DNA of 49,670 bases, taken from positions 1-49,670 of the forward strand of contig JAHLWZ010000088.1 of NCBI GenBank assembly GCA_020536535.1, read 5' to 3'. Position 1 is the first letter of the stretch. Each line of letters starts with the position of its first letter. The notes under the pieces were generated by a model. It was not told the origin of the DNA, did no database searches, and was given only the letters and a program-made list of their open reading frames with translations. The position numbers and the translations under genes were made by a program. Shown here piece after piece: positions 12,951 to 49,228 of the stretch. Origin of the DNA: Pelomyxa schiedti. Its lineage: Eukaryota; Protista; Evosea.

Positions 12951-13262
12951 GTACGGCGTCGTCCTGATAGACCCAACAACAAGAGAAAGAACACAATGAA
13001 TTATGATAAATAATAATCTTGAGATTGAATTTCCTCTCATGTACATATCAGACGAAACACAAATCCACCTCCTGACACTTTTCCTTTTTAAGCAATTGCA
13101 AATTGTGGGAAGAATTGTTGTTTCTTCCGTAAATTCAGGTCCTACGGGAAAAAATTTTTTTTGTGAACAGCCTCTTCACAACAATTGATTGGCTCAATCT
13201 AGATCAAAACAATCCAATCCTGCGAACAAACACCCACCATCCCAAAAAGTCACCTCCAGAGG

Positions 13263-15621
13263 CTACGAATGTTGTTCAACAACAGCGGCGTTGTCGAGGA
13301 GGAGGGTCTGGTACATGCCAGAGTCGAGAAACACCACTAGGAGCTGGTTGGTGGCGGGCAGCCACGAGGTGAGGTAAATGATAGAACCAGGACTTGTAGT
13401 TGGGAGTGCGTTGCGGTAGCTTCCGTCGTACTCGTTCGTGGCAGTGTCAAACACTCCGTCTATTTGCTGGAGGCTATTGCCATTGGGACTGCCAAAGTAG
13501 AACCTGCCACTGACTGCAAATGCGAACCCGGTCTGCTTCTTGACACGTGGAACCACCCACGTCTGTTGCAGGGCCAGTGTGCCAGGGTCCACAAGGCTGA
13601 TGTGTATGTTTCCCTCGTCGGGTGGGGGTGGTGCATACACAACGTACAACACACCGCCAGTGTCAGCAAACCAGCATATGTCAGTGTTTCCACCCCATAT
13701 CCAATGTGATTGGTTCGTGTGCCCGGCATTTGGCAGGTTAGCTGATGCTACCATTGCTCCATCAGACAGGCGCGCCTTGGTAATCGTGGCAGTACGGTAT
13801 TGGTTGCAGTAGATGTGCCCATTGAGTACTGCCTGGTACGTGCCCTCGGGAAATGCCGAGATTCTAAGGCAGAACGCTCGTGGATTGACGTTGTTCTCGA
13901 AGTCGGTCAGGTTTTGAAACTCTGTAAGGTTCATACGGAAATAACTGGCGTCACAGTACACTTTGCCCGTCGTCTGGTCAACGAACACTCTCAGTCCCTG
14001 ACGGGGTGTGAGTTGCTGCACGGATTTGTCAAACTGTTTGAGTTTCATCCTCCCTGTATTTGGTGTTGGCACCTTCTCCATGTGTGTACTGGTTGAGCTT
14101 TGAGCAAGTCGTCCCAGTGAAGAGACGGCTTTGCAAACTGCAGCTGAATCACACTCAAACCTGACCTTGTGTGGGTTTGTTGTTTTTCTTTTATGAAAAG
14201 TATGTGAATGCATACCTCTAGTTGTTGGGGTGTTGCGACGGCATCCCTGGAATTGCAGAGCTTTTCAATTTGTGTAGTGAGGGCCTGATTCACTGATACA
14301 ACTTGGAGGTCAGACAGGCTAGTAGTTACCTGCTGTGCGTATTCTTGTGCTTCTTGTGCAACCTTCAACATCCAGTTGCACCAGTCAATGTGTTCTTGGA
14401 AAGTCTTTTGTTATTGTGCCAGTTTAGTTTTTCTGGGATTGAGAATAGAGCTGTTTGAATATTCAAAGCAGCATGCCTTCTGTGCGGTTTCTATGATTGT
14501 TTTTACTTCCAGGAGCAACTGAGCCTCTCTGGCATTAACCAGAGAAATGATCTTGGCAAATTCAGAGTGTATCTCTGACTCCACTTTCTCTGAAATTTCT
14601 TGTGTATTTTTACAGCACTCCTTTTATTGTTGAGAGGCAAGGCAATATAAAGAAGTTGGAGACAGAAACGCACAATTGCTGCCAATCTTGACGTTGAAAT
14701 TTTCTCCAAATGTAGCCGCAACTTGGAACTGAGTGAGGAAATGGTCTCCTTGAAATTGGAACTCAGGTCCGACACAAATGCAAAGTCATGGTTCTTGTGG
14801 TCAGTCACTCTTTATCGGAGGGTATTTGATTGAGACTATCGATACATTGAAAACGCAACACACTCACAGGTGCAACATATCATGGCCTTGTCAGTTTTGC
14901 AATGCAGCTTCAGTTCCTCCAGTGGATGCTTGGGGCAAAATACCAGCTTGTGCACAGTGGGATTAATTGTTATTCTTGTTTTGAGTTCCTCCACGGTCAC
15001 AACCTGGTCTGTATGTTGGCGATTTTTTGTTCCAATGAAAATTGAGCCAACCTTGTGGCAAGCTGTCCTCTTTGCCCGCAAGTGGTGAGCCTTGTCATCT
15101 GGGCACAGGAACACACCACAGGTGGTGCAAGTCCACGCTGCATTGTGGGAGCCACACTCGGAGCACTCTGGAGGTGGTGGTGTGGTCGTGGCCGGCGACT
15201 GTGCACCAACCAGAGGGACCAAATCCAGCAGGGAACTCTTCCACAGGTCAACTGGGAATCCGTTGCACCCTCCGGTTGGAATTGTTGCCTGTGTTGCGTA
15301 ATGGTTTGGTTGTTCGGTGGTACAGTGTAGGTGGCCAGTTGTTGTCACAATATGTTTGACGTAACAATGTACACCAGAAGCGGGGGTGAATGAAACATAC
15401 CAACGAATGGCACACAGGGCACTCCACGTAAGAGGGTATCGTCACGTGCTTGGCGATGCACTCGAGGCACATCGTGTGAAGGCACGGCAGCAGCCTTCAA
15501 GCAAAGATTGAGGGGTCAGGAAATATTACATAAAAAAAAAACGAATTGGGGACCGTGGGTCACGGAGGAAACAGGAGCAACAAGGGCATGTTATTTGTGC
15601 GACCACTTGGCTCTTCTCCAT
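13263..15621 (-). CDS. TRIM-like RING / B-box1 / B-box2 / coiled-coil / olfactomedin-domain protein (copy A)
   Basis: ATG 15621: MEKSQVVAQITCPCCSCFLRDPRLLPCLHTMCLECI..CPVC (RING); CSEC..CTTCGVFLC..HH (B-box1); CPKH..CKTD..CCTC..HKNH (B-box2); helical linker; OLF-like WGGNTDIC.FAD.GGVLYVVY..GNIHISLVDPGTLALQQTW..K..GFAFAVSGRFY. Confidence 0.85.
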
Positions 15622-46381: not shown

Positions 46382-46481
46382 NNNNNNNNNNNNNNNNNNN
46401 NNNNNNNNNNNNNNNNNNNNNNNNNNNNNNNNNNNNNNNNNNNNNNNNNNNNNNNNNNNNNNNNNNNNNNNNNNNNNNNNN
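46382..46481. other. Assembly gap (100 N, placeholder length)
   Basis: Run of exactly 100 N. Confidence 1.
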
Positions 46482-46928
46482 GCGACTGTGCACCAACCAG
46501 AGGGACCAAATCCAGCAGGGAACTCTTCCACAGGTCAACTGGGAATCCGTTGCACCCTCCGGTTGGAATTGTTGCCTGTGTTGCGTAATGGTTTGGTTGT
46601 TCAGTGTAGGTGGCCAGTTGTTGTCACAATATGTTTGACGTAACAATGTACACCAGAAGCGGGGGTGAATGAAACATACCAACGAATGGCACACAGGGCA
46701 CTTCACGTAAGAGGGTATCGTCATGGGCGTGGTGAAAATTAGGGGGGGGCACGTCCTCACGTGCTTGGCGATGCACTCGAGGCACATCGTGTGAAGGCAC
46801 GGCAGCAGCCTTCAAGCAAAGATTCAGGAAATATTACATAAAAAAAAACGAATTGGGGACCGTGGGTCACGGAGGAAACAGGAGCAACAAGGGCATGTTA
46901 TTTGTGCGACCACCTGGCTCTTCTCCAT
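46482..46928 (-). CDS. Partial third copy (C) of the TRIM-like gene: RING exons, cut off by the gap
   Basis: Near-identical to 15195..15621, from ATG 46928 through the RING to LVPLVGAQS, then Ns. Confidence 0.75.
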
Positions 46929-47072: not shown

Positions 47073-49228
47073 CTAACTTCGATATCCCGTAGTGGTTGTG
47101 GTCTGGGTGACGTCAGATTGACACGGCGGTTCCGTCGCCAATCCGTTTTGCCCCTGGTGAATGTTATCACATGGTTGAGCCACGTTATCAAAGAAGAAGC
47201 ACTGGTACTCTCCGAAAGTGGAGCTCACAACGAGGAGCTGGTTGGAGGCGGGCAGCCACGACGTCAGTAAGATGCGCTCTGGAGTGAGCGGTGTCGGGAG
47301 CGTGTTGCGGTAGCTTCCGTCGTACTCGCCCGTGGCAGTGTCAAACACGCCGTCGATTTCAGTGGCATGCCTGCCAAAGTAGAACCTCCCCCACACCACG
47401 AACGCGAACATGGTCTGCTTATTGGCACGCGGGACCACCCACGTCTGCCGCAGTGCCAGTGTGTCAGGGTCCACGAGGCTGATGTGTATGTTGTCCTCGG
47501 TCGGCGGTGAGTACAGTAGCCACAGCACACCGCCGGCGTCCGCAAAACAGCCTATGTAGGTGTGTTCGCCCCAGCTCCATGGTGATTGGCTGTTGCTCCC
47601 GGCATTTGACAGGTCGGCTGATGCGACCACGGCTCCATCAGATACGTCCGCCTTGATTATTGTGGCGGTGCCGCGCTGGTTGCAGTAGAAGTGCCCGTTT
47701 AGTACTGCCTGGTAAGTGCCGGCCGGTGGTCCACCCAGCATTTCGTAGTGGAAATACCTTGGGTCGATATTCTCCCTGAAGTTTGCTACGTTCTCGAACT
47801 CTGAAAGGGATTCGCTGCCCCAATCGGAGTTCCAGTACACTTTGCCTGTGGTCTGATCAACAAACGCACGTGCTCCCTTACGTTTGACTGACGGCTCCAT
47901 TGATCTGTCGAGCTCTTTGAGGGTCAACCTCGTTGCAGTGTTAGGAAATCCAAGCTGTGCGAAGCAATGAAGCCGTCCCAATGAAGATGTTGCAGCTGAA
48001 TCACACTCAAATCTCACCTTGTTTGGGTTAGTTGTTTGGGTTTTGTAGATATGTGGATGCATACATCAAAATTCGGGGGTGTGACAACATCTGCACAGAG
48101 CTTCTCAATTTGACTTGTGAGTGCCTGATTCACTGAGATAACCTGGAGATCAGACAGTCTCGTCATTGCCTGCTGCGCGTAAGCTTGTGCCTCAGGTGCG
48201 ACTTTCAACTTCTCGTCACATCCATTAATGTGGTCTTGAAAAATCTTGATAGTGTCAGCACTGTGGGATTGGTATGGCTTGCCTTTTTTGCGGATTCCGT
48301 GTGTGCTTTAAGTTGATAGATTAACTGAGCCTCTCTGGCATTCACCAGAGAAATAATATTGGCGAATTCGGAGTGTATCTCAGACTCCACTTTCTCTGAA
48401 ACTGCTTGGGCGTTTTTACACCCCTCCTTTGCTGTTGTTTAGAACAACAAGGAAAAGGGCTGGGAACGCACGATTGCAGCCAATCTTGAAGTTGATATTT
48501 TTTCCAAATTAGGCACAACATATGAGACACTTGTCAGTTTTGCAGTAGAGCTTTAATTCCTCCAGTGGGTGCTTGGGGCAAAATACCGGCTTGTGCACTA
48601 TGGGGATGGTCGTCGCCTTCGTTTTGAGTTCCTCCACGGTCACAACCTTTCAGAGTTGGATTTCCTTTTGGGGTGAGAAAGTTGAACGCACCTTGTGAGA
48701 AGATGTCCTCTTTGCCCGCAAGTGGTGAGCCTTGTCATCTGGGCACAGGAACACACCACAGGTGGTGCAAGTCCACTCTGCATTGTGGGAGCCACACTCG
48801 GAGCACTCTGGAGGTGGTGGCGTGGTCGTGGCCGGCGACAGTGGGACCAAATCCAGCAGGGAACTCTTCCACAGGTCAACTGGGAATCCGTTGCACCCTC
48901 CGGTTGGAATTGTTGCCTGTGTTGTGTGATTAATTCCGTTCTTACTAGTTGTTGGTAAATGACGCGTTCGCTCACACCAACGAATGGCACACAGGGCACT
49001 CCACGTAAGAGGGTGTCGTCGTGGACGTGGCGGAATTGGGGGAGGGGCACGTGCTCGCGTGCTTGACGATGCACTCGAGGCACATCGTGTGAAGGCACGG
49101 CAGCAGCCTGTCCGAGTGATTCAAGCAGTCAAAGAAATGAAAAGGCATCAAATTGGGAACCGTGGGTCACGGCGGAAACAGGAGCAACAAGGGCATGTTA
49201 TTTGTGCGACCACTTGGCTCTTCTCCAT
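47073..49228 (-). pseudogene. TRIM-like RING/B-box/olfactomedin paralog (copy B) with B-box2 deletion and premature stop; probable pseudogene or truncated allele
   Basis: ATG 49228; RING and B-box1 intact; in-frame TAA at 48509-48511 after ICCA, where ~155 bp present in copy A (14714-14867) are missing; OLF exon 47073..48062 still open. Confidence 0.6.

Follow-up and report, generated by a model that had tools for sequence, protein, structure and literature searches.

Predicted TRIM-like proteins of the archamoeba Pelomyxa schiedti carry an olfactomedin propeller as their C-terminal domain

Introduction

Animal TRIM-NHL proteins (TRIM71/LIN-41 and TRIM2/3/32; class C-VII) have a RING, B-box1, B-box2 and a coiled coil, in this order, followed by a target-binding beta-propeller. 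The olfactomedin (OLF) domain is also a propeller, but it is regarded as an extracellular animal module, and its function is poorly understood even in the glaucoma protein myocilin. Animal OLF proteins such as noelin/OLFM1, myocilin, latrophilin and gliomedin are secreted or placed at the cell surface and have a conserved disulfide and, except for gliomedin, a buried calcium ion. In noelin and myocilin, the OLF domain comes immediately after a coiled coil. The gene described here lies at positions 13263-15621 on the minus strand of a 49,670-nucleotide stretch of DNA (contig JAHLWZ010000088.1 of assembly GCA_020536535.1; the whole stretch is hereafter called the window) from Pelomyxa schiedti, an anaerobic archamoeba and thus indeed a protist, as had been supposed from the letters of the DNA. 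Its predicted product has the RING–B-box1–B-box2–coiled coil (RBCC) order of TRIM-NHL proteins and ends with a domain of the same Pfam family and fold as the animal OLFs, preceded by a coiled coil as in noelin and myocilin.

The Pelomyxa protein differs from TRIM-NHL proteins in that its propeller is a five-bladed OLF and not a six-bladed NHL, that a filamin domain is absent and that its host is an amoebozoan. It differs from animal OLF proteins in the absence of a signal peptide, in the residues C/F/S at the calcium ligand positions, in a GTY motif and in the clade to which its OLF belongs. A RING and B-box ligase outside animals, including Amoebozoa, is known as the TRIM37-like 'subfamily A' (PMC3503706, PMC5758549), of which Dictyostelium is said to have a single gene (PMC5758549). 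Members of subfamily A combine a single B-box with a MATH domain, whereas the Pelomyxa protein has B-box1, B-box2 and OLF and its best matches are TRIM71-like proteins, TRIM33 and TIF1, which sets it apart from TRIM37 by description. The TRIM subfamilies other than TRIM37-like have been called animal-specific by Marin 2012 (PMC3503706). OLF as a C-terminal domain is not listed in TRIM classifications, in agreement with an earlier reading of the locus from the letters of the DNA (hereafter the sequence-only reading), which had not recognised the TRIM subclass. The literature gave no paper combining Pelomyxa with olfactomedin, or olfactomedin with B-box and RING in this sense, and no paper describing bacterial or protist OLFs or a TRIM-OLF family; TRIM-OLF proteins are already in public databases under automatic names.

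Gene structure and expression

The start codon of the TRIM-OLF gene is at 15621 and its stop codon ends at 13263, so that the coordinates given in the sequence-only reading are exact for a minus-strand gene. Eight exons, all on the minus strand, encode a protein of 636 residues (1,911 nt, that is 636 codons and the stop, with zero internal stops). The exon model was assembled manually, using GT/GC-AG sites, the reading frames and the proteins of paralogues; the exons of the window gene were searched singly, and whole-protein checks were run on the public paralogue P0005, which is ~55% identical. The eight exon peptides occur in the same order and with the same spacing in at least 10 paralogues, including a head-to-head pair on contig C1061 and a second copy in the window. 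Six full-length NCBI models of 634-656 residues, named 'E3 ubiquitin-protein ligase TRIM71', contain RING, B-box and OLF. Every module is under purifying selection among the paralogues, the median ratio of nonsynonymous to synonymous substitution rates (dN/dS) being 0.22 in the RING, 0.18 in the B-boxes, 0.22 in the coiled coil and 0.41 in the OLF domain. The link between RING and OLF is therefore based on three independent lines, namely the exon order of the paralogues, the six NCBI models and a dN/dS below 1 in each module.

Exon 1 (15554..15621) contains the start codon and the first half of the RING (C12 and C15) and ends with a split codon (phase 2); its peptide is 52-100% conserved among paralogues and always lies immediately upstream of the second half of the RING. 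Removal of intron 1 (15495-15553; GT..AG, 59 nt) completes the RING in frame with exon 2 (15401..15494), which supplies C27, H29, C32, C35, C48 and C51 of the C3HC4 pattern. Intron 2 (15289-15400; GTATGT..AG) is a prediction, the single RNA contig here being unspliced. Exon 3 (15052..15288) encodes the post-RING linker, a Pro/Thr-rich spacer and B-box1, and its 79-residue frame is unbroken in 14 paralogue loci and agrees with the NCBI model of P0005. A shorter form of exon 3 starting at 15198 was dropped for the long form starting at 15288, because the 30 extra residues are conserved in frame in all paralogues. Intron 3 (15004-15051; 48 nt, in-frame) is predicted from paralogue proteins, which lack those 16 residues. 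Exon 4 (14862..15003) encodes a spacer and B-box2 as far as C-x2-C-E, and exon 5 (14674..14807) encodes the end of B-box2 (H-K-N-H) and the start of the coiled coil. The sites of intron 4 between them (14808-14861; GTGTTG..AG) were chosen because no other splice choice restores the C-x2-C-x4-H-x2-H pattern of the paralogues P0002, P0003 and P0005.

Exon 6 (14477..14620) encodes coiled coil that is 60-73% conserved in paralogues. Intron 6 (14405..14476; 72 nt) is of the GC-AG type, its ends reading CT..GC on the plus strand; a GTAAAA donor was dropped, as the RNA shows the GC donor instead. Exon 7 (14216..14404), also conserved in paralogues, encodes the end of the coiled coil and linker helices, and is followed by intron 7 (14166..14215; GT-AG, 50 nt). 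Exon 8 (13263..14165) encodes a 55-residue linker modelled with low confidence, the five-bladed OLF propeller (model residues ~395-632) and the stop codon. The OLF part is thus a single intron-free exon of 903 nt, and the remaining 1,008 nt of the gene are interrupted by seven introns. All seven are 48-112 nt long with a GC content below that of the exons. In the P. schiedti genome, GC-AG introns make up 1.59% and a gene has 7.4 introns (PMC8887013), and the seven introns of the window gene, one of them GC-AG, fit these published figures.

Contigs of P. schiedti single-cell RNA libraries (runs X1, X2 and X3) show that the gene is expressed and confirm the modelled splicing of its 3' half. In X1 and X2, contigs join exons 6, 7 and 8 by splicing, including the joint 14404/14477 across intron 6 and the joint across intron 7, and cover exon 7; exon 8 is covered by contigs of X1, X2 and X3. 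One contig of 1,220 nt extends from the 3' end to 14592, so that spliced coverage reaches from 13258 to 14592, and a contig of X2 covers 14477-14592 of exon 6 and is spliced on to exon 7. Therefore, the coiled coil and the OLF domain share one mRNA.

Compared with the assembly, DNA run X4 and RNA run X1 contain three additional nucleotides in frame (plus-strand TGG) at window positions 15168-15181, with two base changes alongside. The insertion adds one Pro to the Pro run before B-box1 and is probably an allele or a collapsed near-identical copy.

RING, B-boxes and coiled coil

The RING has the pattern C12-x2-C15-x11-C27-x-H29-x2-C32-x2-C35-x12-C48-x2-C51, in which all eight zinc ligands are intact and split over exons 1 and 2. 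The half in exon 2 scores 25.1 bits against Pfam zf-C3HC4 (cut-off 21), and the entire RING of P0005 scores 21.7 bits. The linker after the RING contains the motif IPxGG..FPVDxWKxxLL..PL in every paralogue. B-box1 (residues 96-132) follows the pattern C-x2-C-x7..C-x2-C-x4-C-x2-D-x3-H..H, and the intron-split B-box2 (residues 156-187) the pattern C-x2-H-x8-C-x7-C-x2-C-x4-H-x2-H; B-box2 of P0005 scores 44.5 bits in Pfam. The coiled coil is encoded by exons 5-7. These ligand patterns, in which no zinc ligand is missing, and the Pfam matches, together with the shared eight-exon order, bear out the RING, B-box1, B-box2, coiled coil and OLF order given in the sequence-only reading. No 19-residue window in any exon reaches a Kyte-Doolittle value of 1.6 (maximum 1.47), and therefore the protein has no signal peptide, as that reading had also stated, and no membrane segment.

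The RBCC part of P0005 (residues 1-345) matches TRIM71-like proteins, TRIM33 and TIF1 (22-30% identity, 80-97% of the query covered, best E 2.6e-25); the matched TRIM71-like proteins carry filamin/NHL Pfam domains. The exons of the window gene are 42-77% identical to those of its paralogues. When residues 165-350 of P0005, a paralogue and not the window copy, were modelled in two copies, the ipSAE, a measure of model confidence, was 0.59 against 0.00 for the best control; of solved structures, 21 of 30 homodimers and none of 23 single chains attain this mark. The runs had at least 89% of contacts in common, with a partner pLDDT of at least 84. In the best contact pairs (274-263, 278-259, 296-238 and 256-281) the two residue numbers add up to near 537, which points to an antiparallel coiled coil as in solved TRIM structures.

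The P. schiedti genome also has RING/B-box genes that lack OLF, and the RBCC scaffold therefore appears to be resident there. Such loci, with RING and/or two B-boxes, are C804:78189-78461, C93:116234-119654 and C840:11326-11598; on C93, two of these genes stand in tandem, and the frames after them weakly match Gly_rich_2. These loci suggest that Pelomyxa has a broader set of TRIM-like genes.

Fold and calcium site of the OLF domain

The OLF exon matches Pfam PF02191 with 83.2 bits (cut-off 23.9; E 2.8e-23) over profile positions 29-205 of 246, and a profile of five Pelomyxa copies finds noelin among the PDB sequences at 4.4e-27, as well as myocilin, latrophilin and gliomedin. An AlphaFold (AF2) model built from a 70-sequence alignment has about 20 strands, with a pLDDT of 87.9 and a pTM of 0.84. 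In a Foldseek comparison with the PDB, the best 50 matches were all OLF domains, with target TM up to 0.83 (Olfm1 6qm3: E 9e-20, target TM 0.81). An NHL or other propeller as the C-terminal fold, an outcome that would have overturned the sequence-only reading, is thus ruled out by the all-OLF best 50 PDB matches and by Pfam, which names OLF alone.

The TDICWFADT stretch (residues 497-505) lies where animal OLFs have SDIDxxVDE. The calcium ligands D380, N428 and D478 of myocilin (compare PDB titles such as 6ou0 and 6pke) align with C500, F554 and S603 in the TDIC, GFAF and LTSW motifs. The full triad is absent across the bacterial and protist OLF clade described below, although a bacterial member, P0014, retains the first Asp. 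This clade has GTY where animals have GTG, and an aromatic residue at the calcium-binding Asn/Glu of animals. The sequence-only reading was right that the animal TDID..DE motif is altered here, but the domain is not a modified animal OLF: since the ligands are absent clade-wide, TDIC is the normal state of a separate clade and not decay of an animal domain. Gliomedin OLF is also without a calcium site, and a buried calcium ion is not universal to OLF. At the position of the disulfide residue C433 of myocilin, the window copy has Ser and most paralogues have Cys.

Origin of the OLF domain

An exhaustive profile search with the Pelomyxa OLFs through 1.84 billion representatives gave 411 hits. 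After Pelomyxa itself, the best matches were metagenomic proteins of bacterial architecture (P0008 at 5e-63), and animal OLFs followed from ~1e-22. P0010 combines OLF with ten Stig1-like repeats, P0011 (MSP62909.1) comes from a Myxococcales metagenome-assembled genome (MAG), and leaders of lipoprotein type together with Ig-like repeats are found in P0015 and P0017. In a scan of bacterial genomes, the closest OLFs were found in Myxococcales and Polyangium MAGs; the next closest were in other delta-proteobacterial and Flavobacteriales MAGs. The window OLF is 40-45% identical to those bacterial proteins and 23-30% identical to animal OLFs. The OLFs of secreted proteins from Myxococcota and other bacterial MAGs (for example MSP62909.1; Polyangium sp.), at 36-45% identity the closest outside Pelomyxa, share the signature motifs FxDxxTGKVYW, GTY, WGGxSDIC and GFAF with the Pelomyxa domain. 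These proteins have bacterial leaders and either Cys-rich repeats of the Stig1-like kind or Ig-like repeats, however, and they lack a RING, a B-box and a coiled coil.

Phylogenetic trees split the OLF family in two, with a support of 99 in a quick analysis and 100/100 in a careful one. One side holds the animal-type OLFs and also contains bacterial proteins, for example P0042 and P0077. The other side contains Pelomyxa, a myxobacterial-like group, a group with Eisenbacteria, five B-box-OLF proteins and four sequences around two BTB-BACK-OLF proteins; when the animal-type side serves as outgroup, P0106, from a Candidatus Eisenbacteria MAG, is in one of the two earliest branches, and the metagenome protein P0021 is the other. 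By its sequence, the window OLF thus belongs to a clade shared by bacteria, ciliates and rhizarians, and is not a modified animal OLF. An animal origin was rejected: the animal types lie across the 100/100 split and match at ~1e-22 or worse, against 5e-63 for bacterial-type metagenomic proteins. The comparison with animal and bacterial sequences proposed in the sequence-only reading accordingly gave a separate bacterial and protist clade, within which the Pelomyxa, myxobacterial-like, ciliate and BTB groups form a polytomy (83/38) that would allow one or several origins of the fusions and different numbers and directions of transfers; a placement of Pelomyxa as 'sister to bacteria' in the quick tree had a support of only 85.

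Bacterial metagenome proteins carry both OLF types, namely the animal type (P0042 and P0077) and the protist and myxobacterial type (P0008-P0017). The bacterial OLFs of animal type reach 241-246 bits on Pfam OLF and are fused to Stig1 or MopE-like Cys-rich repeats; they raise the question of the source of the animal domain.

The same OLF type on other protist scaffolds

Two other protist groups have proteins that end in an OLF of the same clade, carried on a scaffold resembling TRIMs or Cullin-3 adaptors. P0020, from the rhizarian Mataza sp. D1 (MMETSP), and P0019 are BTB-BACK-OLF proteins, to which the sequences P0018 and P0029 are related; their domain order is the layout of a Cullin-3 adaptor, with OLF in the usual place of Kelch, and they differ from the Pelomyxa protein in having BTB-BACK instead of RBCC. 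P0097, from Nyctotherus ovalis, a ciliate that hosts methanogens, and P0143, P0068, P0133 and P0147 have the order B-box1–B-box2–coiled coil–OLF. They differ from the Pelomyxa protein in having, instead of a RING, some 95 N-terminal residues with no assigned domain, and in the B-box and coiled-coil part, which is only 23% identical. P0147 is the single gene on a contig of 2.25 kb (GC 57%) with C4A4/G4T4 telomeres at both ends, which identify it as a ciliate nanochromosome. A special kinship between the B-box and coiled-coil parts of Pelomyxa and ciliates was not found, the identity of 23-26% being no better than that to animal TRIMs. Independently of the Pelomyxa gene, these fusions in other protists support a role of OLF as a receptor domain inside the cell.

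The OLF gene family of Pelomyxa

The P. schiedti assembly comprises 52.4 Mb in 5,337 contigs, in agreement with published figures (PMC8887013). The genome-wide copy count that the sequence-only reading had called for gave 23 Pfam OLF matches above the cut-off, corresponding to about 22 copies (at least 22), of which at least 10 are complete RING–B-box1–B-box2–coiled coil–OLF genes; at these loci with the same eight-exon order, the paralogue OLFs are 50-57% identical. So regular a recurrence greatly exceeds what chance would give. The copies are scattered over many contigs, which are up to 467 kb long, some being cut by contig ends, and the strong B-box matches in the genome are all on OLF-bearing contigs.

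Variation is unevenly distributed over the propeller. Among 12 paralogues, the mean entropy of the B-C and D-A loops, 1.22 bits, exceeds the 0.51 bits of the A-B and C-D loops (Mann-Whitney p=2e-5) and the 0.63 bits of the strands, and the B-C and D-A loops are on one face of the propeller. The OLF exon has twice the dN/dS of the RBCC exons. The loop variation and the higher OLF dN/dS would fit a diversified binding face.

The window contains two further copies, both on the minus strand. A second complete gene at 47178..49228 was found by tblastn with the exon peptides (OLF Pfam match at 47322-47852) and is the closest relative of the gene at 13263-15621, with which it forms a sister pair in the tree (100/93); NCBI seems to hold just a 348-residue OLF piece of it (P0004). 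The start of a third copy at 46483..46928 comprises exons 1 and 2 and the start of exon 3, with exon 1 100% identical and the linker identical, and runs into an assembly gap at about 46390-46490 (a run of N, visible as a run of X in the translated ORFs); either the duplicate is truncated or the gap lies within a tandem array.

Elsewhere in the genome, the divergent OLF copies C4:418225-418755 and C867:34251-34766 are 42-49% identical to the window OLF, and no RING, B-box or other Pfam domain is recognisable within about 3.5 kb upstream of them. At C167:38653-39219, the 1,061-residue model P0006 (KAH3766200.1), named 'Ras guanine nucleotide exchange factor', starts with the last 165 residues of an OLF and is probably two genes merged at a contig end.

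Proposed function and alternative explanations

Taken together, the domain order, the dimer model and the family-wide variation make it probable that the gene encodes a cytosolic, dimeric TRIM-like (RBCC) E3 ubiquitin ligase in which the OLF propeller is the substrate receptor. A cytosolic setting is argued for by the absence of a hydrophobic segment, by the residues C/F/S at the calcium ligand positions and by the change of the disulfide Cys to Ser; a receptor role is argued for by the variation in the B-C and D-A loops and by the presence of the same OLF type on other ligase or TRIM-like scaffolds in protists. In the proposed mechanism, the RING would recruit a charged ubiquitin-conjugating enzyme (E2), the coiled coil would form an antiparallel homodimer as in animal TRIMs and place two OLF propellers along the rod, and the propeller face with the variable B-C and D-A loops would bind the substrate, leading to its ubiquitination. 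The bacterial and protist-type OLF was probably recruited as a single intron-free exon onto the resident RBCC scaffold, and the TRIM-OLF family was probably then amplified by tandem and inverted duplication. An intron-free OLF exon in an intron-rich gene is the trace expected from recruitment of a prokaryotic module, though the GC content at third codon positions (GC3) is host-like (0.59 in the OLF exon and 0.56 in the RBCC exons) and gives no signal of a recent transfer.

Several points weigh against this proposal. B-box1 scores 23.1 bits against Pfam zf-B_box, 1 bit below the cut-off of 24.1; the RING and B-box2, being split by introns, were scanned as halves, and the full-length checks refer to the ~55% identical paralogue. 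The dimer score of P0005 may be due to solved TRIM coiled coils that the model has memorised. The assignment of loops to the top or bottom of the propeller was made from the strand order in the DSSP string and not from coordinates. Pairwise dN/dS is below 1 in every module and so gives no sign of positive selection, and at the 12 paralogue loci the median dS is 0.52 in the OLF exon against 0.98-1.19 in the RING, B-box and coiled-coil exons, with dN alike; gene conversion is possibly the cause of the low dS of the OLF exon. In the 5' half of the gene, no spliced RNA over the RING and B-box exons was present among the library contigs, the sole contig there (15108-15478) retains intron 2, and no contig covers 14593-15107.

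A different role for the same protein is unlikely, yet it has to be taken seriously: the TRIM-like scaffold may serve housekeeping, such as RNA or cytoskeleton regulation like that of TRIM71 and TRIM-NHL proteins, with OLF binding an endogenous partner and with no link to prokaryotes or defence. The closeness of the RBCC part to TRIM71-like proteins, TRIM33 and TIF1, the purifying selection on all modules and the fact that no defence genes were seen beside the gene would all be expected of such a protein. Such a role does not easily account for a family of 22 or more copies that includes tandem and inverted duplicates, however, nor for the focus of variation on one propeller face and the twofold higher dN/dS of OLF.

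It is very improbable that the fused protein is an artefact of the gene model, in which a RING/B-box gene would lie beside a separate gene for coiled coil and OLF. The gap in the RNA between the spliced 13258-14592 and the unspliced 15108-15478 would allow this, and the NCBI models P0001-P0004 are short (322-523 residues). The P. schiedti libraries polyadenylate all RNA (PMC10579272), and because of this pre-mRNA or DNA carry-over is a plausible source of the unspliced contig. The short NCBI models lie at contig ends or miss small exons, whereas six models are full-length, the order and spacing of exons are kept in at least 10 paralogues and purifying selection acts on the RING and B-box exons. 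Moreover, B-box2 is split over exons 4 and 5 and exon 5 continues into the coiled coil, so that there is no place for a gene boundary. The sequence-only reading had named separate RING and OLF transcripts as a possible refutation; the RNA joins the coiled coil to OLF, and the contig over the RING and B-box1 is unspliced.

To our knowledge, all characterised OLF proteins are extracellular, and the closest bacterial relatives have signal or lipoprotein leaders and Cys-rich repeats, so that a secreted or surface OLF lectin or adhesin might be considered, as in animals and those relatives. This is highly improbable for the Pelomyxa protein, which has neither a signal peptide nor a hydrophobic segment, lacks the calcium site, has Ser for the Cys of the animal disulfide and consists in its N-terminal half of three zinc-finger domains, typical of cytosolic or nuclear proteins.

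That the contig or its OLF part is foreign DNA, from a bacterium or animal in the single-cell amplification, can practically be dismissed, for although the assembly was made from amplified single cells carrying prokaryotes (PMC8887013, PMC10579272) and the nearest OLFs outside Pelomyxa are bacterial, the gene contains seven short spliceosomal introns, of which the RNA shows two to be removed, its copies are spread over many contigs, the longest reaching 467 kb, its OLF exon is close to the RBCC exons in GC3 and its identity to the bacterial proteins is only ~40-45%.

Implications for Pelomyxa and the OLF family

If the cytosolic ligase proposed above is accepted, it is possible, though rather doubtful, that the targets of the OLF domain are surface molecules of engulfed or cytosol-dwelling prokaryotes. 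A policing or marking role, close to the defence or symbiont control suggested in the sequence-only reading, would be an attractive hypothesis in view of the prokaryotes in the cytoplasm of P. schiedti and of the methanogens of N. ovalis. Ca. Syntrophus and Ca. Methanoregula live free in the cytoplasm of P. schiedti, and Ca. Vesiculincola in vacuoles (PMC10579272). A broader, quite unlikely speculation is that the bacterial-type OLF might be a module for the recognition of prokaryote surfaces that anaerobic protists with cytoplasmic prokaryotes have repeatedly wired to ubiquitin-ligase scaffolds, namely RBCC in Pelomyxa, B-box and coiled coil in Nyctotherus-like ciliates and BTB-BACK in the rhizarian. 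On this equally speculative footing, the Pelomyxa TRIM-OLF family might serve as cell-autonomous machinery for marking or policing bacteria and archaea inside the cell. If this were true, the family would be a protist counterpart of immune TRIMs and would hint at an ancestral function of OLF.

Two-B-box TRIM ligases are treated as an animal invention, a broad survey having found TRIM37-like genes alone outside animals (PMC3503706), and a RING–B-box1–B-box2–coiled coil family in an archamoeba widens their range. The OLF family consists of an animal-type clade and a bacterial and protist clade without the calcium site. The place of OLF at the substrate-receptor position of TRIMs and BTB-BACK adaptors points to simple protein or ligand capture as its core role. 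Since P. schiedti has bacteria and archaea living free in its cytoplasm (PMC10579272), its TRIM-OLF family is a concrete candidate for asking how a protist tells its residents from its prey.

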